Shown here piece by piece: positions 6,132 through 51,779 of a DNA stretch of 64,000 bases. Positions within the stretch are counted from its first letter, which is position 1; each line of letters starts with the position of its first letter. Source of the DNA: Lepidodermella squamata (taxonomy: Eukaryota > Animalia > Gastrotricha); assembly GCA_047495785.1 (NCBI GenBank), contig JBLDXI010000009.1, forward strand, positions 4,402,001 to 4,466,000, read 5' to 3'. The position numbers were made by a program, and so were the translations under genes. A model generated the notes under the pieces. That model had not been told where the DNA came from and did no database searches. It saw only the letters and a list, made by a program, of their open reading frames with translations.

Positions 6132-6596
6132 TCACATAAAAAATGCGACAAAGTTGGCGTTGAATGTCACTTGTTGATGACGCCACTCGTGATGATGAAA
6201 CAGCCGGCGAGGTTCGATGTTGGCGCTATGAACATATCGTTTAAGCGGGCACCTGCCACCGCAACTCGGACACTCGCGTCTGCCGCCGTCACGCTTCAGT
6301 GAACACGCATACCCATGACCGTCACACTTCGTAGCTTTATGCTGTTGGTTTCTCACTTCGCCAGGCCCGTTTTCGCTGCTGCTGCTGTTCACATAAGGCT
6401 GGTTCGAGCTGATGAAGAACTGGTCACTGCTAGCCGGCTTGATTTGCTGTTGTTGCAGATTTGTCGTCGGACAGCCGGCGTTTTCGACCGAATGCTGGCG
6501 GCATTTGAAGTAGACACGAACCAGTGAACCACAACGCGAATTTTCGCCCGAGCTCGTCGGCGTTGTCGGTCGGCTTTCTTCGATTTGCTCAGCCAT
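6132..6596 (-). CDS. Small Cys-knuckle/RxLF family protein, copy 1 (subfamily A, 154 aa)
   Basis: MAEQ..RPTTPT..LVRVYFKC...LKRD...CPSCGGRCPLKRYV...IEPRRLF. Start placed at ATG 6596 by alignment with paralogs; the ORF-track extension runs through a probable 5'-UTR intron. Confidence 0.8.
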   Translation of the reverse strand: MAEQIEESRPTTPTSSGENSRCGSLVRVYFKCRQHSVENAGCPTTNLQQQQIKPASSDQFFISSNQPYVNSSSSENGPGEVRNQQHKATKCDGHGYACSLKRDGGRRECPSCGGRCPLKRYVHSANIEPRRLFHHHEWRHQQVTFNANFVAFFM

Positions 6597-8518: not shown

Positions 8519-8836
8519 TCATTCGTCATGGTCGAAAAGGCGACGCGGCTCGACGCGATGGGCGTGTTGAATGTAGCGACGACGTGAACATTTCAAATAA
8601 TTGCCGCCGCATTTCGAACAACATTGGTAGTGCTTGCTGGCGTCACGCATCAGCAGTGGCAATGAACACCCGACAGCGTCACGCTTCGCTGATTTCTGCT
8701 GATTTTCGCCTACCGATTCGACGGGCCCAGATTCGGCCTTTTCGAACAAATTATGGCGACAAGGAGCCAGTGAACCGGAACACGAATTTTCACCGAAGAA
8801 TTTCGTCGGCGTAGTCGGTTGATTATTTTCAGCCAT
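8519..8836 (-). CDS. Small Cys-knuckle/RxLF family protein, copy 2 (105 aa, divergent)
   Basis: PTTPTK, KRD..C...MRD, CSKCGGNYLKCSRRRYI, VEPRRLF; lacks the F of the F-x-C box. Confidence 0.75.
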   Translation of the reverse strand: MAENNQPTTPTKFFGENSCSGSLAPCRHNLFEKAESGPVESVGENQQKSAKRDAVGCSLPLLMRDASKHYQCCSKCGGNYLKCSRRRYIQHAHRVEPRRLFDHDE

Positions 8837-10034: not shown

Positions 10035-10421
10035 TTATTCTCCGAAAAGCCGCCGTGGTTCGATCCGGTCGCGGTTGATGAACCGCTTGCGACGGCAATC
10101 CCCGCCGCAGTACGGACAGTCGCGCCTGTTGCCGAGCAGCGGACAGCAGGCCTTGATCGACTCGCGATAATGAGTAGGATCCGTGCGAACTGCATTACAG
10201 CCACTCGTCAGGCGCGGTTCTTTTTTCGCGATTATACAAACGTAATCGCTGTAATAGAGCTGGCGAGCAGTGGTGGGATTCAGTATCAGGGCGGTGTCGT
10301 CTTGCGAACGTTGGCACTGAAATCGCTTCGCCATCGTGCTCTTTGAACCGGAACGCCGAGGCGTCGATACCACCAGTTCTTTATTGCATTTTTCGAGATT
10401 CGTGCCAATCTTGCTCGCCAT
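10035..10421 (-). CDS. Small Cys-knuckle/RxLF family protein, copy 3 (subfamily B, 128 aa)
   Basis: STPRR, RFQC, CPYCGGDCRRKRFI, IEPRRLFGE*; splice acceptor just 5' of the ATG. Confidence 0.8.
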   Translation of the reverse strand: MASKIGTNLEKCNKELVVSTPRRSGSKSTMAKRFQCQRSQDDTALILNPTTARQLYYSDYVCIIAKKEPRLTSGCNAVRTDPTHYRESIKACCPLLGNRRDCPYCGGDCRRKRFINRDRIEPRRLFGE

Positions 10422-11755
10422 TTCATTCCTGAATCAATGAAAAATAATGTGTTTTCTTAATGAGAATAATAATAATAATTATTATTCAACTAATATTATT
10501 GTCTGTCTGAATAAAGAAATATCTGAATAAATAACAAATTGGGCACAATTATTATTTTTCGAGGGTTGAAAATCAATTTTCGCTCGAAAATTCTGAATTC
10601 GAGCTCGAAATATTAAATAACATACGGCGATTAAAAAATCAACGTCACCTTGATGATTTTACTGTGAAGCAAAAGGAGAATTGTATGTAAAAAAATGTCA
10701 CGCTGCAAGAGTTCAATTATGCACCCGCAAAACCTTAATTGCCCAAGGCTAATTAACCCTCGCTACGGTAAGTATTATTTATTACTTACCACAGATTCGC
10801 TTACCAGCTTTTGAAGTTGAACAGGACGTGAAAGAGACTCCTCAGTTTCTTTAATATAGGTTTTAAGTTTAAAGTAGAAGAGATCGATTTTTGGTTGTTA
10901 CAGGCCGAAGCGTTTATTATATATAGGTATCTGTAACCCAATTTTTATTGCGGTGTAGAAACTCTATTACATGATCGGGACAATCATCAATGTGTGTCCC
11001 TTTGCGATCGAAAAACTGCGACAATCCGCCGTGGTAAGACTATGGCGCTGAGCCGCGCGCAGCGATACAGCAATATGTCCCACACAATATATAGCTATTT
11101 TCAACAAAAATCACAGGTTATGGTGGGAAATGATTGGAAACTGAATTTGGACAGGTATTTTTTCCAATTATATTAGAACAGAAACAGCCAGTTAGGTGAA
11201 TAAAAAGGTAAAGGAGAAGTTCGCCGGAAATTAAAGATGAGATGAAAATCAGGGGCAAAAAATGAACTCATTGCTTTTCTGATTGCTATGTATCTTAATT
11301 TTAAGTGAAACTTTTCAACATTTCAAATTTCGACCTTTAATTTTCCTGCATCAACAATTTTCATGATTTCCGTGCATCGTAAGCATTAAAAAATAAAAAT
11401 ATATCCTTCTTGTTTATGCAAAAATTAACGCGTTTATTTTTTGTCCGGGTATTCGGTTATTCATTTGCCCATCTCGCGTCGGACACAGAAAAATATATGG
11501 TTCTGGAATCGATTGGAGCCACGGATCGAATATAAAGAACTGAGTTTTTAGGTTCCTGGACTTGGCGATTAGGCACATTTCATGTCAGTCACATTTTCAA
11601 TTCACATTTTAGGCTGTCGGATGAAAAAGTATGTCTGATATGAGCAAAGTTTTTCTCCATTTATTGCGGTAAAAATGAGAGAAAAATTGGAATTTTACAC
11701 ATGAATAGATTTATACATTTTTTCTTCGACAAATTTAACGCTCGAAAAGTTATCA

Positions 11756-12154
11756 TCACGGCTGGTTAGGATTCAGTTGTTCTTCGAAAAGCCGCCGTGG
11801 TTCGATCCGGTCGCGGTTGATGAACCGCTTGCGACGGCAATCCCCGCCGCAGTACGGACAATCTCGCCTGTTGCCGAGTAACGGACAGTCCTTGAGCGAG
11901 TCGCGGTAATCGGAAGGGTCTGTTTTAAGCATTGAATATTTCTGGCGGGGTTTTCCTTTCGCGAGGCACCGCTGGGCGATAATACAGGTGTAGTCGCTGT
12001 AGCACTGGCGAACAATAGGATTCAGTAACAGGGCGCTGTCATCTTGCGACCGCTGGCATCGAAATCGCCTCGCCGTCACGCCTCTTGAACCGAAACGCCG
12101 AGGTGTCGATATTTCAGGCTCTTTTTCGAGATTTGGACCAGTCTTGCTCGCCAT
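11756..12154 (-). CDS. Small Cys-knuckle/RxLF family protein, copy 4 (subfamily B, 132 aa)
   Basis: Close paralog of copy 3; identical CPLLGNRRDCPYCGGDCRRKRFINRDRIEPRRLF block. Confidence 0.8.
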   Translation of the reverse strand: MASKTGPNLEKEPEISTPRRFGSRGVTARRFRCQRSQDDSALLLNPIVRQCYSDYTCIIAQRCLAKGKPRQKYSMLKTDPSDYRDSLKDCPLLGNRRDCPYCGGDCRRKRFINRDRIEPRRLFEEQLNPNQP

Positions 12155-15321: not shown

Positions 15322-15618
15322 TCACAGATTGAATAGCTGCCGCGGTTCGACCTTGGCGCGTTGAATGTAGCGCCGAAGCGGGCAACTGCCGCCGCAATGC
15401 GGGCAACAACGCTGCTTGCTGGTGGCGTCACGCATCAGTGGATACGCGTGCCGCTCGCCGTCCTCGTCGGATGATTTGCCCTGTTCAAGATTTTCGCCGT
15501 TATTGATCTCGCCGCCGCTGTCGGCTGAATGCTGACGGCATTTGAAATACGCACGCACCAGTGAACCGGAACGCGAATTTTCGCCCGAACACGTCGGCGT
15601 TGTCTGTTGATTGGCCAT
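15322..15618 (-). CDS. Small Cys-knuckle/RxLF family protein, copy 5 (98 aa)
   Basis: MANQQTTPT..SLVRAYFKCRQHS...LMRD...CPHCGGSCPLRRYI...VEPRQLF; ATG at 15618. Confidence 0.8.
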   Translation of the reverse strand: MANQQTTPTCSGENSRSGSLVRAYFKCRQHSADSGGEINNGENLEQGKSSDEDGERHAYPLMRDATSKQRCCPHCGGSCPLRRYIQRAKVEPRQLFNL

Positions 15619-17888: not shown

Positions 17889-20318
17889 TTAAACAAGCGA
17901 TCGTGTTTTAACAGTCATTCCCTTGAGCGTGAAATAGCTTAGGGCTAGGCTGGTGGAGAGAGACAGCAAGAGACAGGCGAAAGCAATGGCTGAATGCTGA
18001 CTGGATTGGTTTTGCAACGTAAAAATTATCAGTATCGAGCAAAGTAACAATGACAAAGCATTCAGCGGGCCAATAACAATTCCTCCAATCTCCTGGCAGC
18101 AACTATTAACCATAAGTTTCATGCCCTGTTTAACACGATAGCCTTGATAAGAACAGAATGCCAAGACCGCCATGTGTAAAGCAGCTAAGCTTGCCATCCA
18201 CGCAATTGCGTTCGGCGATGAGCAAACGACTTCGGATATTTCAAAATAAGTGTCCGTAATCGGGTCATAATTCTTAATTCGCGATGCGACTATCAATTCA
18301 CAGGAGAATGAATCAGAGAGCAGCCAAATGATCAGGAGCAACATGTTACCATTGATAAAGGCTAAAGTAGCCAGAAATGTTCGCTTTTGGATCTTGGCTT
18401 CAAACTCAACCGCTGGACCTTTCGCAGAATCGCGGATGCTTGGGTAAACCGAAACAATTGTGCTGCGCGTCTTTGCGTCAGATCTCGATCTATCCCTAGT
18501 GTTGTTTTGGCCAGTGGATGCATCAGAGCCCTCAACTACTGCCAATATGTGCACAACTTTGCCGTTCTGCATAACTTTAACACGTTTGGGTAGAGGGGGC
18601 AATTTCCTCGCCAGGAAAAAAGTTCGGAATGAAACCACGCCAACAACGAGCGACATCGATAGAACAAGCAAGACAAGTCGAGTCATTGATATCGCCAAAC
18701 TGTAAAAGCTGGTCTTCATCGAAAACGCAACTGCTGCGCCATTCAACACTATGCATCCAGCATACCCGGCTATTTTCATGAAAGGAGATGTGCCAAGTTC
18801 TGGTTTCCCGCTTTTCTTTATGGTCACGAAAATGATTCCAAGCTGAAACAATGTAAGGAGAGCTGCAATCGTTATGACAGCTGTTGAAACTTCAGAATTA
18901 ACCTCTCGCACCAGCGAAATTGAAAAAGCAACGTCCCTCGGCGGGTTTCCGCCGTTGTTCCAAGCAGCCCAATCCATCGCCTCGAGAGGGGAGACTTTAT
19001 AGCGGCCGTAGAACATGAAGTCCAGGCTGGCATTAACCTCAACGGAAGCGAACTTATTGCGATATCCTTTAGGATTGTAGTGCGAGTAAAGAATCATGTC
19101 ATTCTCGGAGTAGCCGCGCTTGCTGAAACGAAGTTGGCCCCTCAGGCCTGATATGTTGACAGCCAAAACAGATTCATTTACAACCTTCATCACAAATTCG
19201 GCGTTTGTGTTCATGTCTCGCAATGACATGTTGTAATCTCGTTTCAATCGCTTATCGGCTTCATGCATGGCGTAGATCCCCATCATAGTGGCATCATGGC
19301 AGACATATTTCAACGATCCTGCAGTTGCAGAGCGAGGTACTTTTAGAATTTCAAGCATTTTCTCCTCGAAGTAAGTAGTATTGTAGCCCAGTTCGCTGAC
19401 TCTGCTATCATCGATGACCTGATTGACCGGACCGAAAAACATCGAGTACCTGAGTTGCGTTCTGATTATCTCCCTATCACACCAAGGATCCAAGAAAGCA
19501 CTTGGTGAAATGTTGTTCGGGTCCGCAGCAAGTGAGTTCGACATGAAAAACATGTATCTTTGGCCGGTTATTCCAGCGTGAAAAGCCTTGCAAAGAAATC
19601 GCCAGAGCAGCGGCTCATTCGTAATGTACGCCACGATGATTCGAATGTCGTGAAAACGAATCTCCTCAATAGCGTCGTCTGTTATGTCCAAGACAAGGTT
19701 GAAAGTTGGAACCTTTATGCCGCTCTCCAGCGCGTATCTGTTGACGTATGTTGCTGAAATATAGTCGTTCGGAGCGCTGGCCAGCGTTATAATTCCTATA
19801 GTCGACCATTTCCCTATGTCTTTGAAGAAATGAACCAAGGATATAGCATTGAGCTCTCCGTTTGACTGAACGTTGTAGAGATTCGGATAGGTCACGTGAT
19901 CAGCGAGAAATGGAGCCGAGCATGCTATGGCTAGTCCGACCATGTTGAAGTATTTCAACGGCTTCCCATATGGTTTGCAGCCAATGGAGAAAAATGGTCC
20001 GATGAAAATCGGCGAGCGGATGAGACCGTTATCTGTTCTGTTTTCCCACGCTCGGCCGTATCGCACGAGTTCGCGGACTGGGGCGTAGCCTTGCGTGAAG
20101 CCCTCTTCATCACGATAGTCTGGTACGATGTTGTAGTCAGGTAAGACATCAGTTCGGTTGTTGGCGTGATCTATTGCGATTTTCACGGCTGGCGCGCACG
20201 CTATATGCACAACGGGGAACACATGAAGCATAGATATGTTGAATTTCTTATTCTGGCAGTTGCATTGTGGTGACGAAAATGCAATCAGAATCAAGAAAGT
20301 GTACCCTTTTAGCGACAT
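17889..20318 (-). CDS. Class C GPCR, GABA-B receptor-like (Venus flytrap domain + 7TM), intronless, 809 aa
   Basis: Signal peptide; ANF-receptor-type motifs (AVKIAIDHANNRTDVLPDY, FIGPFFS, A.FLAD...YPN, HDATM, GLRGQLRF); no Cys-rich domain; seven hydrophobic segments with WLL.D in TM4 and ECL2 EVVCSS. Confidence 0.8.
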   Translation of the reverse strand: MSLKGYTFLILIAFSSPQCNCQNKKFNISMLHVFPVVHIACAPAVKIAIDHANNRTDVLPDYNIVPDYRDEEGFTQGYAPVRELVRYGRAWENRTDNGLIRSPIFIGPFFSIGCKPYGKPLKYFNMVGLAIACSAPFLADHVTYPNLYNVQSNGELNAISLVHFFKDIGKWSTIGIITLASAPNDYISATYVNRYALESGIKVPTFNLVLDITDDAIEEIRFHDIRIIVAYITNEPLLWRFLCKAFHAGITGQRYMFFMSNSLAADPNNISPSAFLDPWCDREIIRTQLRYSMFFGPVNQVIDDSRVSELGYNTTYFEEKMLEILKVPRSATAGSLKYVCHDATMMGIYAMHEADKRLKRDYNMSLRDMNTNAEFVMKVVNESVLAVNISGLRGQLRFSKRGYSENDMILYSHYNPKGYRNKFASVEVNASLDFMFYGRYKVSPLEAMDWAAWNNGGNPPRDVAFSISLVREVNSEVSTAVITIAALLTLFQLGIIFVTIKKSGKPELGTSPFMKIAGYAGCIVLNGAAVAFSMKTSFYSLAISMTRLVLLVLSMSLVVGVVSFRTFFLARKLPPLPKRVKVMQNGKVVHILAVVEGSDASTGQNNTRDRSRSDAKTRSTIVSVYPSIRDSAKGPAVEFEAKIQKRTFLATLAFINGNMLLLIIWLLSDSFSCELIVASRIKNYDPITDTYFEISEVVCSSPNAIAWMASLAALHMAVLAFCSYQGYRVKQGMKLMVNSCCQEIGGIVIGPLNALSLLLCSILIIFTLQNQSSQHSAIAFACLLLSLSTSLALSYFTLKGMTVKTRSLV

Positions 20319-21746: not shown

Positions 21747-22196
21747 TCAGCTTTTCTCGTCAAATTTACGGCCTGGTGTATCGATATTTTCGTCCTCAGC
21801 GAATAGTTTCCGCGGCACCACCGGCTTGGCGGCAATGCGCCGGCGGCGCGGGCAGTCGCCGCCGCAGAACGGGCACAAGCGCTTCTCGCGGCAGGCCGGG
21901 CCCGTGTAGTGGCCGTTCGGGTTGCGGTACTGGTACGGCTCGTCTCGCTTCATGATATTGATGCGGCCTTTGGCGGTGGCCCGGGCGCGCGCCTCGCATG
22001 GGTTCTCGCTGAGCGTGAGGCGCGGACTGTGCAGCAGCGCCTCGCACGAGAACTGCAACTTGGTGACGACGGCTTTTTCAGCGGCTTTACTGTCGTGATG
22101 GTTCATAAGTGAACTGCCCGCCGATTTTGAACTCGTCGGCGTGTTGGTAGCTGTTGTGTTAGGGCCATCGTTACCAGCTCGTTCCGAACCCGACAT
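21747..22196 (-). CDS. Small Cys-knuckle/RxLF family protein, copy 6 (subfamily C, 149 aa)
   Basis: NTPT, KLQFSC, KRDEP, CPFCGGDCPRRRRI, VVPRKLF; second TP site (TPGRK) after the motif. Confidence 0.8.
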   Translation of the reverse strand: MSGSERAGNDGPNTTATNTPTSSKSAGSSLMNHHDSKAAEKAVVTKLQFSCEALLHSPRLTLSENPCEARARATAKGRINIMKRDEPYQYRNPNGHYTGPACREKRLCPFCGGDCPRRRRIAAKPVVPRKLFAEDENIDTPGRKFDEKS

Positions 22197-24015: not shown

Positions 24016-24423
24016 TCATTCGAGATGATGAAACAGCCGGCGAGGTTCGATGTTGGCGCTATGAACGTACCGTTTAAGCGGGCACCTGCCACCGCAACTC
24101 GGACACTCGCGCTTGCCAGTGGTCAAGCCGTCACGCTTCAGCGAACACGCATAACCATGCCCGTCACGCTTCATTGATTGTTGCAGATTTCTCACTTCGT
24201 CAGGCCCGCTGCTTCTGTTCACATAAGGCTGGTTCGAGCTGAAGAACTGGTCTCTGCTAGCCGGCTTGATTTGCTGTTGTTGCTGATTTGTCGTCGGACA
24301 GCCGGCGTTTTCGACCGAATGCTGGCGGCATTTGAAGTAGACACGAACCAGTGAACCGCAACGCGAATTTTCGCCCGAGCTCGTCGGCGTTGTCGGTCGG
24401 CTTTCTTCGATTTGCTCAGCCAT
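24016..24423 (-). CDS. Small Cys-knuckle/RxLF family protein, copy 7 (subfamily A, 135 aa)
   Basis: Near-identical to copy 1 including flanks; ATG at 24423. Confidence 0.8.
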   Translation of the reverse strand: MAEQIEESRPTTPTSSGENSRCGSLVRVYFKCRQHSVENAGCPTTNQQQQQIKPASRDQFFSSNQPYVNRSSGPDEVRNLQQSMKRDGHGYACSLKRDGLTTGKRECPSCGGRCPLKRYVHSANIEPRRLFHHLE

Positions 24424-25582: not shown

Positions 25583-25627
25583 TCATTCGTCATGGGCGAA
25601 AAGCCGACGTGGCTCGACGCGATGGGC
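25583..25627 (-). pseudogene. 3' fragment of the small family (AHRVEPRRLFAHDE*)
   Basis: Matches the end of copy 2 (AHRVEPRRLFDHDE*) and its 3' flank (25450-25530 versus 8400-8480); similarity stops abruptly at 25627. Confidence 0.65.
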
Positions 25628-25761
25628 TACAACAATGTGTCCCACATCATTTTAAAATATTAAAAAAAAACGAAAAGTGTACTTCGTGTAATATGACATT
25701 TTTACGTTTCATATATATTTTTTTCATAAAATTTTGTTTTTCACGGAAACGACGAATAGGA

Positions 25762-31291: not shown

Positions 31292-31777
31292 TCAAGCGTG
31301 GTGATGATTGAAAAGCTGGCGCGGTTCAACGGTGCGTTGAATGTAACGACGGCGCGGGCAGCAGTTGCCGCCGCAGTGCGGGCACTCGTTGTGCGCACTG
31401 GCGTCACTCATGAGTGGGCACGCGCGGCCGGCGGATCCGCCCTCGTCACGCTTCATTGACTTGATGCGCTTATCCTCGCCATCATCCAACTCAACGTCAT
31501 CAGGTGCTGCGTTGTTCAAAGGCCGTTCGAAGGCCCGCCCATCTAGATCCATCGGCTCAGTCGGCTCGTCACGCTTCACTGGTTTCATCTGCTGATCAGC
31601 AAGCCCGATTTCACCATCGTTCGAGCAAAAGTTAGACGGCTGTCTGTGGTTCATTGCTGGACTAGCGGTGTTGTCGACCGATTGCTGGTGGCATTTGAAG
31701 AAGGTGATACGATGGGCCAGTTCGCCATACCTCGTTGGCGTTATCTGTTGATTTGTTGCATTTAGCTCCTCGGCCAT
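31292..31777 (-). CDS. Small Cys-knuckle/RxLF family protein, copy 8 (161 aa)
   Basis: ITPTR, RITFFKC, two KRDE repeats, CPHCGGNCCPRRRYI, VEPRQLF, His tail. Confidence 0.8.
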   Translation of the reverse strand: MAEELNATNQQITPTRYGELAHRITFFKCHQQSVDNTASPAMNHRQPSNFCSNDGEIGLADQQMKPVKRDEPTEPMDLDGRAFERPLNNAAPDDVELDDGEDKRIKSMKRDEGGSAGRACPLMSDASAHNECPHCGGNCCPRRRYIQRTVEPRQLFNHHHA

Positions 31778-33622: not shown

Positions 33623-34288
33623 TCAAGCTTCGATCTCCAGGTCGAGGCGGCATTTTTGTAGACGAACCCGGCTGTGATGAGGCATCATACTTTTCGACAC
33701 CTTACCACAATATTTCCCAGGCGGGGTCGATTCGATAACGGCTTCAGGTGGCGAATTCGAACACCGATCGCTGTCGACCCTGCGCCGCCACGCTCGTTGA
33801 TCGCCGTCGCGCATGGTTACGTAATAGCTGGCCCGCTGTTCGGCGGCGGTCGATGAAGCCACAGGCCGTGTAATCAAATCGAGACGGCCGTTAGCCTCGC
33901 ACAGCTCGACAAATGCCTTGTAGCCACCCTGGAGTAGGTAGACCTCCGGGTAGTCCAACTTGGGGTAGTTTTCTCGGTTGAATGCGCGGTCTTTGTTGCG
34001 GAACCAGCGAAGCGCAGCCGGGGCGCGCTGGCTGCTGAATTCGCAGTGGAAAATCAGAACGCGGCGGTGCTGTTGTTGTTTCACGATGGGGAAAGCCGAC
34101 TCGAGTTGCGACAACAACGGCGTGTTGATCGCTCCGCGAATGTGGCCGCCTTCGAATTCGTACGGGTAACGGCAGTCTGCAATGTCAAATGCGTCGATTT
34201 TCGACGCGAATCGCCCGTCCAACAGGTCGATGAGAACCTGAGGCGAAATGGCGGTCAAGCTTTTGGCTGGCGAGGTCGGTAAAAGAGT
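33623..34288 (-). CDS. cdc25: Cdc25 (M-phase inducer) phosphatase catalytic exon; 5' exon(s) not identified
   Basis: LPT...ISP, DCRYPYEFEGGHIRGAIN, active site HCEFSSQRAP (HCX5R), DR..N..YPKLDYPEVYLLQGGYKAF; phase-0 acceptor tttcag ending at 34289; no in-frame ATG before the catalytic Cys. Confidence 0.92.
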   Translation of the reverse strand, partial: TLLPTSPAKSLTAISPQVLIDLLDGRFASKIDAFDIADCRYPYEFEGGHIRGAINTPLLSQLESAFPIVKQQQHRRVLIFHCEFSSQRAPAALRWFRNKDRAFNRENYPKLDYPEVYLLQGGYKAFVELCEANGRLDLITRPVASSTAAEQRASYYVTMRDGDQRAWRRRVDSDRCSNSPPEAVIESTPPGKYCGKVSKSMMPHHSRVRLQKCRLDLEIEA

Positions 34289-35882
34289 CTGAAAGTATAA
34301 AAAAAAATCATTTTTTTCATATTTTGAGCATGGATTTTTTTGAATTTTCGATAGCTAGCAGCATGTCCCAAAATTGTTGCGGAAATAAAAAATTTTGGAG
34401 GTCGCAAAATTAATTCGCCAAAAAAGCCGTTTCGAGAATTTTATGGCGAATTGCATGATTAATAATAAATTAATAATATAATTAAAAAAATTCTTAAATT
34501 TTGCCTTCTTAAATTCTTAAATTTTGCCTTCCTTCGCCTTCCACAAAACCCGGAAGGGTATAGACGCCTTAGTCGAGTGGAAGTCAAATAAAATCATTCG
34601 TATTCGTATAATTAAAAAAATAATCAATTAAAAGAAATTTAAAATTGCCGTAATATTATGGTGTAATGAATAATTTTCCATTGTCCTCGGCATTTTGGGA
34701 CACTGCTCTAAAGTAGCCTCAAATAAGGATTCTCACCTATGATAATTTCACGATTTATTATGAAATTTTGAAATCATCAGTGATGATATCATAATTTGTC
34801 GAGAATTTTCCAAGCTTATCTGTTGTTCGATCTGATCGCTTCGATACATCTGTATTGCCAACAAGTCGATAGACATATTAGCGATCGATTTTTCTATTGC
34901 TTCGATTTCAATAGCATCCGCTTGATTGCAATTGGCTACTAGAACAAGCGCCATAATATATAATATGCGTCATAAAAGTCGCGATAAATAAAATCTGAGA
35001 TGACAAGTTTTTCATCGGTGATTTGCAAAGCTTTATATAGCACCTCATATCAACGCTGTCGCCGTTTACAAGAAATGGCCCTGTAACATAACGTCCCCAA
35101 CTTTTATAGTCGGGTCCTTTTTTGTCTTAATAATTGTCTTAATGCGATAATTATTCTATCTAATCGCGAATGTCTTTTTAAATCTATAAATTGCCGCCGT
35201 CCAAAACTAGGAGACATGCTGAAGAATGAGGGCCAATGAGCGATTTCGGTAAGGAAAAGTAAGCTGGTCTCGGCCGGTATCGCTGTTTGGGCCTCAAAGG
35301 ACGTAGCCGAGTCGAAAACCTGTGTGGCGCAGGTTGAATTGTCAACTCTATATTGTGAATTAGGTAGCGTGATCTCGTCTTGGACACCATTGTTAGACGA
35401 GGACACCTTTTCGCTTCTGATCCAACGTTTTTGGCCAAACTTTTTATCAGCAAAAAACTTGTTGTCTTATTTAATGGTTTTAGTTAACTTTTGGGAAAAT
35501 CATGTTTTTCGAAGGTTTTAAAATTTCGTACATTCCAACGGACAAGCGGACAAGATTATTCCTGATTTTCCGGAATATTGTTTTGAGCTGGGTCCTTTTC
35601 TGAATATATGTAATACTTATATAATATTGTACACGTAATATTAATAACATTAATCACATTTAACCGAAGAATTTGATATTTTCCCGAGAAAGTAATACGG
35701 TATTTTCGGTATTTTGCCCGGTTGAACCGAATTTCTCGGATTTTTTATTTCATTGACAAATGTCATGCTTAATAATTTTTCTGACCTAAAAATGCTGACC
35801 TCGCCTCTCATTTTAGACTCTCTACCCCTTATCAAGGACTTCTCTTTTTGTTAGCGCATATTTAGGACGCAATGTATAATTA

Positions 35883-36835: not shown

Positions 36836-37246
36836 TCATTCTTGATGATGATGGTGATGAAACAGACGGCGAGGTTCGATTTTGGCGCGTTGAACGTACC
36901 GCTTTCGTGGACACTTGCCGCCGCAACACGGACACGCGTGCCGGTCACGCTTCAGTGAACACGCGTTCAATTCTTCACGCTTCAGCGGTTTTCGGCGGCG
37001 ATTTTCAGGCCCATCAGCATCATTTTCCCGACAAGCATCAGGCTGGTTCGAGCTGATGAAGAACTGGTCATTGCTAGCCGGCTGGATTTGTTGTTGTTGT
37101 TGCTGTTTTGGCGTCGTCGGACAGCCGGCGTTTTCGACCGAATGCTGGCGGCATTTGAAGTAGACACGAACCAGTGAACCGCAACGCGAATTTTCGCCCG
37201 AGCTCGTCGGCGTTGTAGGTCGGCTTTCTTCGTTTTGCTCAGCCAT
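36836..37246 (-). CDS. Small Cys-knuckle/RxLF family protein, copy 9 (subfamily A, 136 aa)
   Basis: RPTTPT, RVYFKC, LKRE/LKRD, CPCCGGKCPRKRYV, IEPRRLFHHHHH. Confidence 0.8.
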   Translation of the reverse strand: MAEQNEESRPTTPTSSGENSRCGSLVRVYFKCRQHSVENAGCPTTPKQQQQQQIQPASNDQFFISSNQPDACRENDADGPENRRRKPLKREELNACSLKRDRHACPCCGGKCPRKRYVQRAKIEPRRLFHHHHHQE

Positions 37247-38317: not shown

Positions 38318-38782
38318 TCAATTTTTTGCATTATATTTTCCGCCGGATCCATTGACGTGTTGATTTTCATAAAACAGCCGGCGCGGAACAACCGGCTTGG
38401 CGGCGATTCGCCGGCGCCGCGGGCAGTCGCCGCCGCAGAACGGGCACACGCGCTTCTCGTGGCAGGCTGGGCACGTGTTGTGGCCGCCCGGGTTGCGGTA
38501 CTGGTACGGCTCGTCTCGCTTCACGGCATTTGCTCGGGCCTTGGCGGTGGCGAGGGCGCGCGCCTCGCACGGGTTCTCGCTGAGTGTGAGGCGCCGGGTG
38601 GCGCCGGGCGATGATGAGTCATCACGCGGCGGGTGGCGGCACGTGAAGTGCAGCTTTTCTGCAACGCTGGCTATTCCGTGAAAGATTTTACCGTTAACCG
38701 CCGCGTTCGAACTCGTTGGTGTGCCCATGTTTGTTGAATTCGGGCCATTGCTACCGGATCCTCGCCTTGAGTTATAGGCCAT
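38318..38782 (-). CDS. Small Cys-knuckle/RxLF family protein, copy 10 (subfamily C, 154 aa)
   Basis: Paralog of copy 6: GTPT, KLHFTC, RLTLSENPCEARA, KRDEPYQYRNP, CPFCGGDCPRRRRI, VVPRRLF. Confidence 0.8.
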   Translation of the reverse strand: MAYNSRRGSGSNGPNSTNMGTPTSSNAAVNGKIFHGIASVAEKLHFTCRHPPRDDSSSPGATRRLTLSENPCEARALATAKARANAVKRDEPYQYRNPGGHNTCPACHEKRVCPFCGGDCPRRRRIAAKPVVPRRLFYENQHVNGSGGKYNAKN

Positions 38783-41385: not shown

Positions 41386-42657
41386 TCATCCTTTGAATTC
41401 ATGCATCGATATGACAGAAATTGATTTGTGTCGAGGAGCGGCCCATTTGCCGCTGGTTCGGCTAATTTCCTCTGGAAGGAACCTCACCGTACGAGTGATA
41501 TTGCTAACGCTCGTTGTTCGGCTGTCCAGCTGCTGATCAACGTCCTCGATATCTTCACCATCCTCAACTTGGCCTGAATTCAAGATCATTTCGCAGCAAA
41601 ATACATCGGAAATCGACGCGAAAAACTGTTCGATAAGATTTCGGTAGATTTCTAGCAGAGCGCTCGCGAAAAATACGCCGAAAAATAGCCAGAAAACCAC
41701 AAAGAGTCGATACAGGACGAATTCCTCTTCTTCGCTGTAATTTGATCCGCGATTCATAGTCGCGATTTTGTCTCCAAATCCTGGGGAAACATTTTCAGGG
41801 CAACTCTTTCATTTTTTCGTTAATTTTTTACCTATTTTACTCAAGCTGATAAAGCTGTAGTAAAGAGAGTCTTCATAACCCCAATTTTCCATATATGAAA
41901 AGAGCCCAGAAGGAGCGAACAGGAACAGCGCATAACCCAAAGCGAAAATGCCAACAGAGACCCAATTGAAAGGAAGTCGATTGATGCTACAAATCTTAGT
42001 AGTAAAATGTATCAATCCAAGGCGTAAATGTTCGATGGTAATTAGGAACAAGGGAAATCCTAGCATGGCGTAAATCACACTAACAACTTTCCCAGGCTCA
42101 GTTTCAGGACATAGACTACCATATCCTATAGTTGAGACTAATGTCAAACTGTAGAGTAAAGACCCGGTCAAATCCCATCTCGGGGTTCTACCCATAATTT
42201 CCCAATTAATCTTAACCTCATCAGATAGGAATTGTAATACAAAGGCACCCATTTGGTCCTGAGCGCAATTTTTTCGAATGAAATGCAGTACGGCTTTCGA
42301 TGCATTTAAGGGGTCTACAAAAAGTCCGATCACCGTCACTCCGTCAAGATTAGAGTCCAGTCGCTCCGAGCTAATCAATCGCCACCATTTGTTATTGAGA
42401 GGTTTTAGGAGTAAGGATAGACTTTCGACGTTTTGAGGCGCTTGTCTGACGAGGCTTTGCTCGGCTTTAGTGCGCTGCAGTGCTCGTAGCGCTGAGGCGT
42501 AGTCCCTTCGAGCCTTGGCGACGGCCTTTTCTTCATTGGGTGATTCGATTGCGTTGAAAATGAACATTCCAATAAGGAGATAAACTGCGAGAGCTAGAAT
42601 GGCTATGCACCGGTAGTGTAAGCAACATGCTGAGGTTGAAGTCTGGCAACACGGCAT
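41386..42657 (-). CDS. Two-pore-domain K+ channel (K2P/KCNK) A; exons 42657-41832, 41780-41386
   Basis: M1 YLLIG..IF.AIESPNE, P1 STIGYG, P2 SKIG|FGD split by a 51-nt intron, M4 YRLFVVFWLFFG. Confidence 0.85.
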
Positions 42658-42890
42658 TTTCACGAAAAAATTGTTTGAAAATTTGCAAAGGTGCAAGTTC
42701 AATAAAAGAATACTGTACTGCAAGACTGGACCGGAAATCGGTTGGCGGAAATTATGTCCCAGGCTGGTCTCGATATTACAAGGCGAACAGGAAGGTAGGT
42801 AAATAGGACTAAATGCCTACTTTTCCGGTGCTTGTTCCTCAATTCAAAGAGAGCTGAAAATGGGAAATATTACATCATCTGGTGTAAAAA

Positions 42891-42970
42891 AGCGCTGCCA
42901 GGATTTGAACCTACACGCGCGGAGACCGCATCTGATTTCTAGTCGGACCCCTTTTCCCGCTATTTGCAAT
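42891..42970 (-). pseudogene. Degenerate tRNA-Ser(AGA)-like sequence (tRNA pseudogene or SINE head)
   Basis: Minus strand TCCGA-CTAGAAA-TCAGA anticodon arm, long variable arm GCGGTCTCCGC, T-arm GGTTCAAATCC; D arm and acceptor stem are degraded. Confidence 0.4.
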
Positions 42971-43374
42971 ATTTTTTTGAAATATACATCAATCCTTCAG
43001 AGGAATACACTTAAATGGGAAGTTGAGAAATAATAACAAAGAAACAATTTTAGATTTCGTTTGCACGAGCACCTTCAAGAAAAATCCCGCGCAATCCTTT
43101 ATTTAATGAAACACGCCTAATATTTTTTTAAGTTGACAGGTCGTAAGCCTTGTGATGATGTCTGATACCAAATGCTAAATGTCGAAAGGCAACGAAAGGC
43201 GTAAGTAAAGAGTATGAGAATGAGTATGCGCTATTCAGAAAAGTTAACATCCTCGCTCATCCAGAAGGCTATAAGAGAGTGACAACAAAAGCTTATTAGA
43301 ATAATTTGAGTTCAGGGGAACCAGATAACTTGATTAGCTATTGGTGTGGTTGGGCCTTCAACTCGTCCTCTTGC

Positions 43375-43723
43375 TCACCCGCCGAAGATGCCAAAAACGC
43401 TCTCAAATATTCCCTTTCCAACCTTGCTCGATTCTGACCCTTGGCCAGCCTGGCTGGTTTTATTGCCATTTGTGCTTGGCTTTTTGCCAATGCCAATAGA
43501 GCGAAATGTTGTTGTGGTTGCTTTGGTTGTTGTGGTTGGTGCTTTGGTTGTCGCGATTGATTTTTTGGTGGTAGCGGCTCCGCGAGCTGCCTCCATGTTT
43601 ATAGCTTGAGTCGCCAATACAGCTACAGCACCCTGTTTCGCAAAACACATTTGAGGAGGCTGCTTCAAAAGCATTATCGTAATAACTTACCACTACGAAG
43701 ATGGTTAGCAGGAGCTTGTTCAT
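43375..43723 (-). CDS. Small secreted Thr/Lys-rich protein, copy B (exons 43723-43691, 43632-43375)
   Basis: MNKLLLTIFVV, 58-nt intron, GAVAVLA; same layout as copy A, ends KVGKGIFESVFGIFGG*. Confidence 0.7.
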
Positions 43724-44534
43724 TTTTAGAGCTGGAAATGACTGATTAGATGAATTGAACGATTGTTGAAAAGTGAATTTTTCGCTGGTTGCTGCAGGTA
43801 TTTATGGGCACCTACCATCGGGGGGTGGGCATCTGAGCTAACAACGATTTAGCCTGGCTTTTACATCCACTTCATAATATCTAACGGAATGAGGATTCGA
43901 GACGTTTCGATGCGATGATAACAGCGCTTTTCATTGATGAAAACACAAGATACCAACAGCGGTAGGTTCAAGTAAATAGAGGGCGCTTTTTGCTAGCTGC
44001 CAAAGGACTCGTTTTTGACAATGCTTATGATGGGTGTTCGTCTTAAAGTTGAAAAGCACTAATTCACTGTAAATTTATGTTTCGCTATCAAATTATAGTC
44101 GCGAGCATAAAAGAGACACTCGAAAAATGGTTAAGCCGCTGCTCAAATTTTATCTTGTGTTAGAGTCAGGTAAGAGAATCGAAAGCTTCTATGAATGCAT
44201 TATGGGACCCGGGGCTTCTTCTGGCCTCATTCCAGGCAATTACCTCTTCAACAGATTGAGCGACAGCTATTTTTAAAAACCGCCGACTTTCCACACGGAG
44301 AATTTTGACCATAATTCGATATCATTCAGCTTACCAGGCGAGCAATTGCCAATTATGGGTTCTCAGCTGATCAGTGCTCGAGTTTCAAAGTAATTATACT
44401 GGGTTGGCCAAAAGAGCTATACAGTAAATAATATATTGCCATAATTGAGAACAAAGCCCATAGTTCATGACCAAAGTAGTAACCAAACTTTTAATACTCA
44501 GCGGTATATTCAAGTATCATCATATTCGGCAAGT

Positions 44535-46211
<1,677 letters not shown>

Positions 46212-46728
46212 TCAAAAAGCATGAGCAACAGTTCACAATTCCAATCGCTATTCGGTGAACAAAGGCAGAAATAGCATGTGCAACAAGATTACGATACGTT
46301 CTTCATCGATTTTAAGACAGCTAATTAAACACTAAGCGGCGCGAGTCATTTGTGCAGACTATTATACGGCGTACCAGAGCTCGGTGAGGCGAGTTTTAAT
46401 CTCGAGAAGAAAAGTAGATAGAATAGTACGTACGACTTGTTTTCATTACTTTGCTCACTTCTTTCCGCTCAAAAAGCAGTAGGAAGCGAACAGTATGGAT
46501 TTTTAGGAAATTGAAATTATATAGCGTGCATTTCGCAGTCTGATTATCGCTCTTTTTTCTTTCATTTCGTCGCTGGCTTTCACAGGCCAGAAATGGCCCC
46601 GGAAACAGCCGGGCCCTTTTTCTAAACATACTCGATGAAAAAAAACGAATCTTTTATTACTATAGATGCCTGAGATGAATAGCTAAAGCGTAAAATAATT
46701 TGATAAAAATGCTAGAGATTTTCAAGTC

Positions 46729-48430
46729 TCATTCCTTAGAAGAGCTGCTGCCGTTTTCTGGACGCACTGACCTATTTTTGTTATCTTGCTGCTTCTTCTT
46801 GTCACAGAGCAGGTCTTTGTCGATAATTTCCAGCAAATTGATCGTATTGGGCTTTTCTTCATCTGGCTCGTCAATTTCGCCTGGATTTTCTTGTTGGCTC
46901 CTAGCACGAATGCTTTTTCGTGTAGCTATCCTCCGTTTCCAATGAATTCGTTCGATAAGGCGTTCAACCAAGGTCTGCATAATTTGAATGAGAGTCGCGA
47001 CGAACGCAATGCCAAAAAACAGCCAGGTGCATAAGAACAGACGGTAAAGGCCGTATGAAAGGCCGCTTGTACCGCCACTTCTTTGCCCAGCAATCAAATC
47101 ACCGAATCCTGAAAAAGGATCAATTGAAATTTTTTTTGGAATATACTTAACTCTGAATTTAATTACCAATCGTTGTAAGGCTAATGAATGAAAAGTACAA
47201 GGCCGAAAGGTAGTCCCAATCTTCAGTAGAAGCGAAGAAAATTGACGGCAGAAATATGAATAAGCAGCATCCGACAAGGGCTACAACGCTAGTTGCAACT
47301 CGAATTTCAGCACGCCTCAACGCCTCTTCATGCCGTTCTGACATGGAAACAGATCGATGCACTTTATTCAACGGATTTCTCACAATATTTGGCGCAATTT
47401 CCGCAGATCTTTCGATGATAGTCGAAGAATGCCGTTGAAAGAACCTGGCAAGAGTGTAGAATAGTTTGTGCAGCTTGCACGCATACCGCGTCAACATTCC
47501 CCTCATCTGAGCTACAACGACCAGAAACAACGGAATTCCTATCATTGCGTAAAACACGCAAATGAATTTCCCGAAATTCGTCGCCGGTGATAAATTGCCG
47601 TAGCCGATTGTTGTTACAACAGCCAGGCAAAAGAAGAGCGAACCAGGCAAATCCCACTTCAAATTCTCCTTTTTCGCAGTATCGTTGAAATCTGCGCATG
47701 AATCACTGTGCTTAGTCATTCCACCGTGTTCGCCGCTCTTCAATAGCTGGACTTTGGTTCGATTCGTGAAAAATACAGTGAGAGTCAGTAGCTGCCTGCT
47801 TTGCCCCTCATCTGATACGACAGGTCTTCCAGCTTTAACTCCTAGAACGTCGATTTCCTTGCTGCCGTAGTAAAAGAGCTTGTTAAATGAGCGAATTAGG
47901 ATTTCGTTGTAGTTGAGGTAGGATGGATCTTCTGAGGAGTTGCCTTTTGACGAGTTGATAATCGGCTCTTCAACCAAAGGACCGGCAGTGAGATCGATAA
48001 TGAAAGTTTGCTCCTCGACGTGAGGTCCGAAACGAGAGTTGACCCAAGCCGAATTGTCGAGATCTTCACTAGACCGAACATTGGCGATTTTTATGCTCTT
48101 AGTCTCAGCAGCCAATCTATGCCGGTATAATTCAGCCGGTGATTCGATAACGTAAAACAGAAGCATTCCGAAGATCAGCCAAACAAAAAGGCAGGCGAAG
48201 GGTGTGCAAAACCGGAGTAATGTCTCGCGATTCCACTTAGGCCAATAGTTATCGAACTGCAGTTTACCTTGGTCGAGCACGACTTGCTTAGCATGTTTCA
48301 TGCCATCTTTGGACTTGTCGATTTTCGAACTTATTTGTTCGGATAGGGCGCGTGACTTGCTATGGATTGACGTAGCTAGTGAACCCATACGGTACCCGGT
48401 CGCAGCTGCATGTTGCTCCTCGTCCATCAT
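46729..48430 (-). CDS. K2P channel C; exons 48430-47167, 47108-46729
   Basis: P1 [11 protein letters not shown]2 TTIG|FGD split by a 58-nt intron, M4 YRLFLCTWLFFG. Confidence 0.9.
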
Positions 48431-49794: not shown

Positions 49795-50397
49795 ATGTCT
49801 GACACAATTCCAATCACGATTACAGTGAATGTTTCGAAGCGGGACATTCTCCAGGTGGCGAAGAACAGGGCCGCTCTGGCTGACAAGGCTCTCCGAGATC
49901 GAGCAATTTCACAAACGGTAGCTTCCTTCCTTGTTTGCCAATCTTTCGCCTTGATTCATGTTGCGATCGGTGCATCAAAACTCGACCTGATCGAGGACGA
50001 ACAGCCAATTGCGACCCTTAGAACGCAAGACCAGGTCAACACCCGTTGGCGAGGTATCGAAGAATTGGTCCCAGGCTGCGTTGGTTCGGTATTGGCTTGC
50101 TTAGTCTTCATGCCGATTATCCGCTACATCCAGCGACCTGGTTCATCGACGAAAAGCCACAAAACGGCTTTGTTTGTTAGTTTCTGGATGAATTTCTTCT
50201 GGTGTGCTTGGTTTGCAATTCTTTGCGGCGTTTTCTCGCGTCAAAATTACGAGGATCCACCGCGCGTTGCCGACGAGCCGGGCATTGATGCCTTGAATCT
50301 TGTTCTTGCTATCATCAATTTTGTCTTCATGATTGTTAACGTACTGTCTTCGCTTTCGACGTTGCGAGCCAATAAGGCGGCTCATGGCGACGAATAA
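49795..50397 (+). CDS. Uncharacterised four-TM membrane protein, copy A (200 aa)
   Basis: Four hydrophobic segments; strong similarity to 51117-51779 (ALRDRAISQTVASF.VCQSFALIHVAIGA). Confidence 0.8.
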   Translation: MSDTIPITITVNVSKRDILQVAKNRAALADKALRDRAISQTVASFLVCQSFALIHVAIGASKLDLIEDEQPIATLRTQDQVNTRWRGIEELVPGCVGSVLACLVFMPIIRYIQRPGSSTKSHKTALFVSFWMNFFWCAWFAILCGVFSRQNYEDPPRVADEPGIDALNLVLAIINFVFMIVNVLSSLSTLRANKAAHGDE

Positions 50398-51116: not shown

Positions 51117-51779
51117 ATGACAAAGACAGTGCCAATCACTGTTGTTGTTAACGTACCGGCAGACGCGCTGCTTGAAGGCGCCAAGGACGAAAAAACCGCG
51201 GAAGTGGACGAGGCTCTTCGCGATCGAGCGATTTCACAAACAGTTGCGTCCTTCATCGTTTGTCAGTCATTTGCACTGATCCACGTCGCAATCGGAGCGC
51301 AGAAAGTTGATTTCGAACAAGAGCAAGAAGATGCATCTATTTTGAACTTCATGGAGCAGCCAACCTACAGCCCGAGACCGCCACGTACCTGGAATTACAC
51401 TTATGCCCGCGGTCTTGAGGAACTTATCCCCGGCTGTGCTGCATCACTTTTAGCTGCCGTAATCTTCCTGCCGCTCATTCGATTTATTCAACGGCCTGAT
51501 TCGACCCGCAAGGGCCACATTGCTGCCCTTGCTGTCAGTTTCTTTATGAACATGCTGTGGTGCGCGTGGTTCGCTATTCTAACAGGCATTTATTCGCGCC
51601 AAAATGAGCCCCCGAACCTTGTTGACGGAGAGAAGGGAGTTGACGCCCTCAACCTCATCCTGGCTATTATCAACTTCATTCTCATGTTTGTCAATGTTCT
51701 GTCATCATGCTCGACCATTCGCAAGAAGAAAGATACGGATGATGATTACGATGTCAAGACTGAGAGCGGGTCACTATAA
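51117..51779 (+). CDS. Uncharacterised four-TM membrane protein, copy B (220 aa)
   Basis: Tandem paralog of copy A; conserved protein despite many synonymous differences. Confidence 0.8.
   Translation: MTKTVPITVVVNVPADALLEGAKDEKTAEVDEALRDRAISQTVASFIVCQSFALIHVAIGAQKVDFEQEQEDASILNFMEQPTYSPRPPRTWNYTYARGLEELIPGCAASLLAAVIFLPLIRFIQRPDSTRKGHIAALAVSFFMNMLWCAWFAILTGIYSRQNEPPNLVDGEKGVDALNLILAIINFILMFVNVLSSCSTIRKKKDTDDDYDVKTESGSL

Follow-up and report, generated by a model that had tools for sequence, protein, structure and literature searches.

A tandem array of small-protein genes whose conserved C-terminal module ends in a possible cyclin-docking PRxLF motif

Sequences of the form R-x-L-F bind the hydrophobic patch of cyclins A and E, as exemplified by p21 (RRLFG), p27 (RNLFG) and p107 (RRLFGE), and in the Cip/Kip proteins p21, p27 and p57 the chain extends beyond RxLFG into a helix and a hairpin that bind the CDK. 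Fruhstart (Z600) is the product of a single gene in flies. This small Drosophila protein is reported to restrain CDK1 by occupying the hydrophobic patch of the cyclin (PMC8228447), and the small, unstable HCMV protein pUL21a uses RRLF(Q) to bind the hydrophobic patch of cyclin A2 and carries only a minimal S/T-P site (PMC4231158). In Emi1 and Emi2, the C-terminal tail, which ends in RL, contacts the APC/C and competes there with the tail of UBE2S; the zinc-binding region of these proteins is of the C6HC IBR type, and RL forms the extreme C-terminus of a conserved 14-residue tail (PMC4141206).

What cyclins accept around an RxL core is described by measurements that paired about 100,000 peptides with 11 human cyclins. 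No core was stronger than RxLF, in which Arg occupies P-2 and Phe P+1; the preference is for Arg, Lys or Gln at P-1, strongly for a nonpolar residue at P-4, and mildly for acidic residues in the C-terminal flank (PMC12356897). The strict ELM regular expression for such sites (DOC_CYCLIN_RxL_1) specifies [^EDWNSG] at P-4, [^D] at P-3 and [EDST] 0-3 residues past PhiC; since fewer than 15% of its matches bind any cyclin, a match to the consensus is a weak predictor of binding (PMC12356897). The same work defines an alternative PhiN mode for a set of peptides that bind more strongly than expected, those of CDC6 and PKMYT1 among them: P-3 is Pro or Gly, and the pocket normally taken by P-4 is filled by a hydrophobic P-5 residue. 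Leu, Phe and Tyr are the favoured P-5 residues in this mode, and when P-3 is Pro, a small aliphatic P-4 is less strongly preferred and a basic residue is weakly preferred at that position (PMC12356897).

Here we describe a family of small proteins, encoded in a window of 64,000 nucleotides (the whole stretch of DNA that was analysed), whose C-terminal region carries a sequence of this kind. By combining tblastn with a six-frame motif scan, 12 paralogs were located, all on the minus strand and lying between 6.1 and 38.8 kb of the window; ten of them are intact (copies 1-7 and 10-12; 98-161 aa), copy 9 is frameshifted and copy 8 is a fragment. The copies, including the open reading frame under study (copy 3) and its main elements, are listed below.

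6132..6596, minus strand: copy 1, 154 aa, ...IEPRRLF followed by a 21-aa tail
8519..8836, minus strand: copy 2, 105 aa, the sole intact copy with a 24-residue spacing and with CSKC replacing CPxC
10035..10421, minus strand: copy 3, the open reading frame under study, intronless, 128 aa, ending in ...IEPRRLFGE*
10359..10364, minus strand: Thr20-Pro21 of copy 3 (STPRR), a candidate CDK site whose TP is kept in every intact copy
10095..10118, minus strand: Cys cluster of copy 3, CPYCGGDC (C102, C105, C109)
10044..10064, minus strand: extended motif of copy 3, I-E-P-R-R-L-F (P-5 to P+1)
11756..12154, minus strand: copy 4, 132 aa, with a tract of about 90 nt over the module that is identical to copy 3
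15322..15618, minus strand: copy 5, 98 aa, PRQLF
21747..22196, minus strand: copy 6, 149 aa, VVPRKLF, passing the strict ELM expression
24016..24423, minus strand: copy 7, 135 aa, a recent duplicate of copy 1 (dS 0.15)
25583..25651, minus strand: copy 8, a C-terminal fragment alone (...RVEPRRLFAHDE), the last 22 codons
26246..26562, minus strand: copy 9, a frameshifted pseudogene whose reading frame changes between the N- and C-terminal halves, with the second cluster Cys lost (CPFYGG) and QPRRLF kept
31292..31777, minus strand: copy 10, 161 aa, acidic (pI 5.9), PRQLF
36836..37246, minus strand: copy 11, 136 aa, PRRLF followed by a His-rich tail
38318..38782, minus strand: copy 12, 154 aa, VVPRRLF, passing the strict ELM expression and containing a second sequence, RRLTL

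The unit formed by copies 1 and 2 (5-9 kb) was apparently duplicated as the one formed by copy 7, the copy 8 fragment and the copy 9 pseudogene (23-27 kb). Copies 1 and 7, separated by a dS of 0.15, have upstream sequence in common, and the 21-aa tail of copy 1 was gained by read-through of the stop codon that terminates copy 7. The regions upstream of the copies otherwise align little and contain no shared TAGteam, TATA, Inr or DPE pattern; a search of the window against Rfam gave no match.

The proteins begin with hydrophilic N-termini (MAEQ.., MASK..) and no signal peptide, and nine of the ten intact members have a pI of 8.6-10.1. Each intact copy carries a single N-terminal Thr-Pro within residues 7-21, always with Thr and never as Ser-Pro, so that the dipeptide noted in the initial annotation is indeed present in all ten. 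The same annotation had assigned the full CDK consensus S/T-P-x-K/R to several copies; at the N-terminal site this is correct for copies 2 (TPTK), 3 and 4 (TPRR in both) and 10 (TPTR), whereas the TPGR of copy 6, itself a full match, sits in the C-terminal tail. A TPxxS pattern fits at the Thr-Pro in seven of the ten intact copies, and the -2 position is hydrophobic or Pro in six. Downstream of the Thr-Pro comes a block of the form [R/K]-[V/I/L]-x-F-x-C, in which the Phe and the next Cys are nearly invariant, and the middle of the proteins is variable and of low complexity, with one or two (L/M)KR(D/E)...C units. The block resembles an RVxF site and lies 10-25 residues past the Thr-Pro, for example at residues 27-32 of copy 11 (approximately 37151-37168).

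The conserved part of the proteins is a C-terminal module of 25 residues, C-P-x-C-G-G-x-C-[P/R]-x-[R/K]-R-[Y/F/R]-[I/V]-x4-[I/V]-[E/V/Q]-P-R-[R/K/Q]-L-F. In an alignment of 11 sequences (A1; mean column identity 33%, residue numbers of copy 3), nine columns are invariant, namely C102, G106, G107, C109, R113, P122, R123, L125 and F126, and conservation reaches at least 90% at T20, P21, C36, P103 and C105. The distance from the first cluster Cys to the Pro of the motif is exactly 20 residues in nine of the ten intact copies and 24 in copy 2; a further Cys upstream, at the aC[P/S]L position, is found in nine of the ten, the linker between cluster and motif is basic and contains an invariant Arg, and the tail beyond the motif Phe amounts to 2-21 residues and is in most cases acidic or His-rich. 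When the module is written as a degenerate DNA pattern, CPxCGGxC-N36-PRxLF, it matches nine times in the window against 0.00 matches expected from shuffled sequence. PRxLF is the end of a Cys-cluster module with fixed spacing and not a free-standing tail, a connection that the initial annotation does not draw.

Several features indicate that this module is maintained by selection on the protein. Pairwise dN/dS between copies is 0.24-0.56 over a range of dS from 0.15 to more than 1, indels among copies stay in frame, and mean pairwise identity is 62% in the C-terminal module vs 31% in the remaining protein. For the invariant Pro, Arg, Leu and Phe, the copies use three, three, three and two synonymous codons, respectively, which argues for protein-level selection rather than recent copying alone, and the codons of the cluster Cys and Gly residues likewise vary among copies. 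For one pair, gene conversion probably adds to the uniformity: between copies 3 and 4, a tract of about 90 nt that spans the Cys cluster and PRRLF shows 100% identity (10043-10133 vs 11785-11875), compared with a pS of 0.37 outside it. A search of sequencing runs found no RNA run containing the locus; the one DNA run confirms the assembly and has doubled k-mer depth over the common tract. In the DNA run, summed contig depth over 11453-12061 is about three times that of the flanks, with allelic or paralogous variants at 11728-11847, which suggests that further near-identical copies of the copy 4 region exist elsewhere in the genome. The array is best explained as a set of real, lineage-restricted genes for small, basic, apparently disordered multi-motif proteins.

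The sequence P-R-[R/K/Q]-L-F occurs in all 12 copies, as PRRLF in nine, PRKLF in one (copy 6) and PRQLF in two (copies 5 and 10). The invariance of Arg, Leu and Phe reported in the initial annotation holds, the preceding Pro is likewise invariant, and the translation of copy 3 does end, as had been stated, in RRLFGE*. With respect to the known requirements of cyclins, the core [RK]-x-L-x(0,1)-[FL] is present in the ten intact and both broken copies, always as R-x-L-F, and the residues found at P-1 (Arg, Lys and Gln only) are exactly the three that cyclins prefer. The mostly acidic or His-rich tails are in keeping with the mild preference for acidic C-terminal flanks. The strict ELM expression, on the other hand, is passed by only two of the ten intact copies (6 and 12), because the other eight have Glu at P-4. 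What a plain RxLF model leaves unexplained, namely Pro at P-3 together with Ile or Val at P-5, is accounted for by the known PhiN mode: the pattern [I/V]-x-P-R-x-L-F, with its hydrophobic P-5, is present in all ten intact copies, and Pro at P-3 with Ile or Val at P-5 was recorded for all 12; the initial annotation had not noticed this pattern. This fit is itself imperfect, as P-5 is Ile or Val rather than the favoured Leu, Phe or Tyr, and P-4 is mostly Glu rather than the weakly preferred basic residue.

AlphaFold2 models of copy 3 built with the family alignment (mean pLDDT 53, pTM 0.14) and of the C-terminal module alone (mean pLDDT 62, pTM 0.24) are essentially devoid of secondary structure and of a packed core, with the highest local confidence over ..EPRRLF..; the input was a shallow alignment of 11 paralogs and contained no zinc, so that a small metal-dependent fold remains compatible with these predictions. 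Burial of the motif in a folded core, which the initial annotation had named as an observation that would speak against docking, is accordingly not what the models predict. The cyclin-docking reading of that annotation is partly supported: it agrees with the RxLF core, the P-1 residues and the lack of a predicted fold, and disagrees with the strict expression that eight of ten copies fail.

Among the closest described systems, CDC6 and PKMYT1 (PMC12356897) share with the family Arg at P-2, Leu at P0, Phe at PhiC, Pro at P-3, a hydrophobic P-5 and a P-1 residue drawn from Arg, Lys and Gln, and the motif of the family, like theirs, would lie in a disordered region; they differ in that the family has Ile or Val at P-5 instead of Leu, Phe or Tyr and mostly Glu at P-4, their host proteins are unrelated to those described here, and docking by the family is a prediction from sequence. 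pUL21a shares the literal RRLF motif within a small protein, but it is viral, its motif is N-terminal, it drives the degradation of cyclin A2, it has a separate APC/C-binding site and it lacks the Cys cluster. Compared by description, Fruhstart differs from the family in that the latter forms a tandem array of at least ten intact genes whose products carry a Cys cluster. The likeness to p21 and p27 that had been proposed holds for the motif itself, the RxLF(G) core being common to both and copy 3 ending in RRLFGE, but not for what follows it: the Cip/Kip domain (Pfam CDI, PF02234) is unmatched in the 11 members at E up to 10, and the proteins stop 2-21 residues after the Phe. With nothing after the motif to reach the CDK and no CDI match, the family is not Cip/Kip-like.

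The best-supported reading, though a tentative one, is that the C-terminal [I/V]-x-P-R-[R/K/Q]-L-F docks onto the cyclin hydrophobic patch in the PhiN mode, as in CDC6 and PKMYT1, with Fruhstart and pUL21a as functional precedents for small RxL proteins that act on cyclins. In this scheme, the Pro at P-3 would kink the chain and thereby direct the hydrophobic P-5 residue into the pocket usually occupied by P-4, and docking would bring the single N-terminal Thr-Pro, which lies 85-139 residues further upstream, within reach of the bound CDK. If present at high dose, the proteins would act as competitors of other RxL substrates in the manner of Fruhstart, and competition of this kind is a plausible way, by analogy, in which the family could work; its members may be phosphorylated by the CDK at the Thr-Pro, may block the hydrophobic patch by competition, or may do both. 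The genes, the selection acting on them, the layout of the motif, the missing predicted fold and the neighbouring Cdc25 exon are observed, and from the protein sequences we infer cyclin binding, phosphorylation and an effect on the cell cycle. The fixed-spacing Cys cluster does not follow from a simple docking-motif model, and CPxCGGxC probably serves as a small element that binds zinc or a partner and cooperates with the docking motif.

The array also surrounds a Cdc25 catalytic exon, and the neighbouring genes with assigned coordinates are as follows.

17889-20318, minus strand: class C GPCR-like gene with an ANF_receptor domain, a single exon of 809 aa, inside the array
33623..34354, minus strand: Cdc25 catalytic exon, Rhodanese domain with HCEFSSQRAP, E = 3e-35 to human CDC25A, between copies 10 and 11
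41809-48430, minus strand: three tandem two-pore-domain potassium channel genes, Ion_trans_2, with long exons
49795-50397 and 51117-51779, plus strand: tandem multi-pass membrane proteins of 200 and 220 aa, respectively

The 200-aa membrane protein (49795-50397) has no Pfam match. The window looks like animal DNA. It further contains an integrin alpha gene and a polycystin-1-like exon that encodes GPS, PLAT, polycystin and PKD-channel domains; no cyclin gene was found in it. The presence of Cdc25 within the array, on the same strand as the copies, is suggestive of a cell-cycle role. Clustering of functionally related but non-homologous genes is uncommon in animals, and an unrelated GPCR gene is also located inside the array; for these reasons the linkage is given modest weight, and it may be a coincidence. 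Neither a regulatory N-terminus nor a start codon was identified for the Cdc25 exon. Possible upstream exons extend to about 35130, and the frame opens after a pyrimidine-rich, acceptor-like site; tblastn with all members detected no homology to the family in these adjacent exons.

The observations on the Cys cluster lend themselves to the main rival interpretation, in which the 25-residue block would be a single zinc-dependent module, made of three to four Cys ligands and a basic strand ending in Leu-Phe, that contacts a non-cyclin partner such as nucleic acid, chromatin or another protein, with RxLF as a structural or contact element whose likeness to a Cy motif is coincidental. The invariance of C102 and C109, the conservation of C105 (at least 90%), the upstream Cys in nine of the ten intact copies and the near-invariant C36 are all in line with such a module, as are the constant 20-residue spacing to PRxLF in nine of ten, the strongly basic linker with its invariant Arg, and the high pI (8.6-10.1) of nine of the intact proteins. 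The only copy that lacks a cluster Cys is the frameshifted copy 9, whose second cluster Cys is gone (CPFYGG), and most consensus RxL matches bind no cyclin at all (PMC12356897). Yet AlphaFold predicts no fold for the module, whether alone or within the whole protein, no zinc-finger match in Pfam or the PDB rises above noise, and both the restriction of P-1 to Arg, Lys and Gln and the combination of Pro at P-3 with a hydrophobic P-5 are left unexplained; we regard this interpretation as somewhat less likely than docking.

Recruitment of PP1 is improbable as the main function. According to this proposal, the proteins would be PP1 regulators or bridging proteins in which the N-terminal [R/K]-[V/I/L]-x-F-x-C provides an RVxF docking site near the Thr-Pro and the C-terminal module a second site of interaction. 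Using the RVxF expression [RK]-x(0,1)-[VIL]-{P}-[FW], a fit is obtained at one aligned position in six of the ten intact copies, as RVYF (copies 1, 7 and 11), RITF (copy 10), KLQF (copy 6) and KLHF (copy 12); pseudogene copy 9 also fits (RIYF), and the Phe and the next Cys are nearly invariant. The expression is loose and commonly matched, however, and the remaining four intact copies do not comply, with RAYF in copy 5, KRF and RRF in copies 3 and 4, and no such block in copy 2. As the proposal also ignores the far better conserved C-terminal module, it could at most be an addition to another explanation and not a true rival.

A more elaborate version of cyclin docking, which we hold to be highly improbable, sees in the family lineage-specific, expanded two-point regulators of cyclin-CDK that would form, together with a Cdc25 paralog, a gene cluster for timing the cell cycle. 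RxLF would then anchor the cyclin, C-P-x-C-G-G, 20 residues upstream, would reach the CDK cleft as a non-phosphorylatable Cys-Pro pseudosubstrate or as a zinc clamp, and the variable N-terminal halves would tune the choice of cyclin or stage.

That the proteins are APC/C inhibitors like Emi1 and Emi2, in which a short basic tail behind a zinc-binding region would engage the APC/C through Arg-Leu and compete with UBE2S, is extremely improbable: the layout is similar, as these cell-cycle regulators also carry Arg-Leu in a short basic tail that comes after a Cys-rich element and the family shows a Cys cluster, about 12 mostly basic residues and R-R-L near the C-terminus, but only three to four of its Cys are conserved, no C6HC IBR, F-box or any other Pfam family is matched, D-box and KEN box are missing, and RL is never C-terminal, always preceding the invariant Phe and 2-21 more residues. 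A scan of the family proteins for KEN, D-box, ABBA, PIP, APIM and LxCxE motifs found none. Two further identities were considered and set aside: an RFamide-like neuropeptide precursor, given that there is no signal peptide, that Gly follows the Phe in copy 3 only and that no dibasic site is present there, and a protamine-like sperm protein, judged unlikely since Arg and Lys make up only about 12-21% of the residues.

Searches for relatives returned nothing that would assign the family to a known group. Against Pfam, the 11 members gave only noise-level zinc-finger matches at E up to 10 (E ≥ 0.24), and a profile search of the PDB found no relative; nothing was retrieved from the ESM Atlas with copy 11 as query, from 5.8 billion proteins by a word search with copy 3, or from metagenome contigs scanned with the degenerate DNA pattern. 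Profile A1, searched exhaustively as an HMM against 1.84 billion representatives, likewise retrieved nothing, the block being too short for distant relatives to reach significance. The family is therefore an orphan within reach of the libraries searched. Look-ups of the exact proteins encoded by copy 3 and by the neighbouring GPCR gene returned no record. The 809-aa GPCR encoded inside the array has a single relative, at 26% identity, among 5.8 billion proteins, which indicates that the lineage is poorly sampled; considering this and the shortness of the conserved block, the absence of relatives is not strong evidence of a recent origin.

In summary, should cyclin docking prove to be the wrong reading, the locus would still provide a clear example of a 25-residue module under strong selection and without detectable relatives in about 1.8 billion representative proteins. 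If the reading is right, the array would represent a family of small cyclin-docking proteins that evolved independently, expanded greatly and use the recently described mode defined by Pro at P-3 and a hydrophobic P-5, beside Cdc25; it would lend evolutionary support to a binding mode so far defined only by mutational scanning of human peptides, and it would offer a natural example of docking-motif proteins arising from nothing and diversifying to tune CDK activity.
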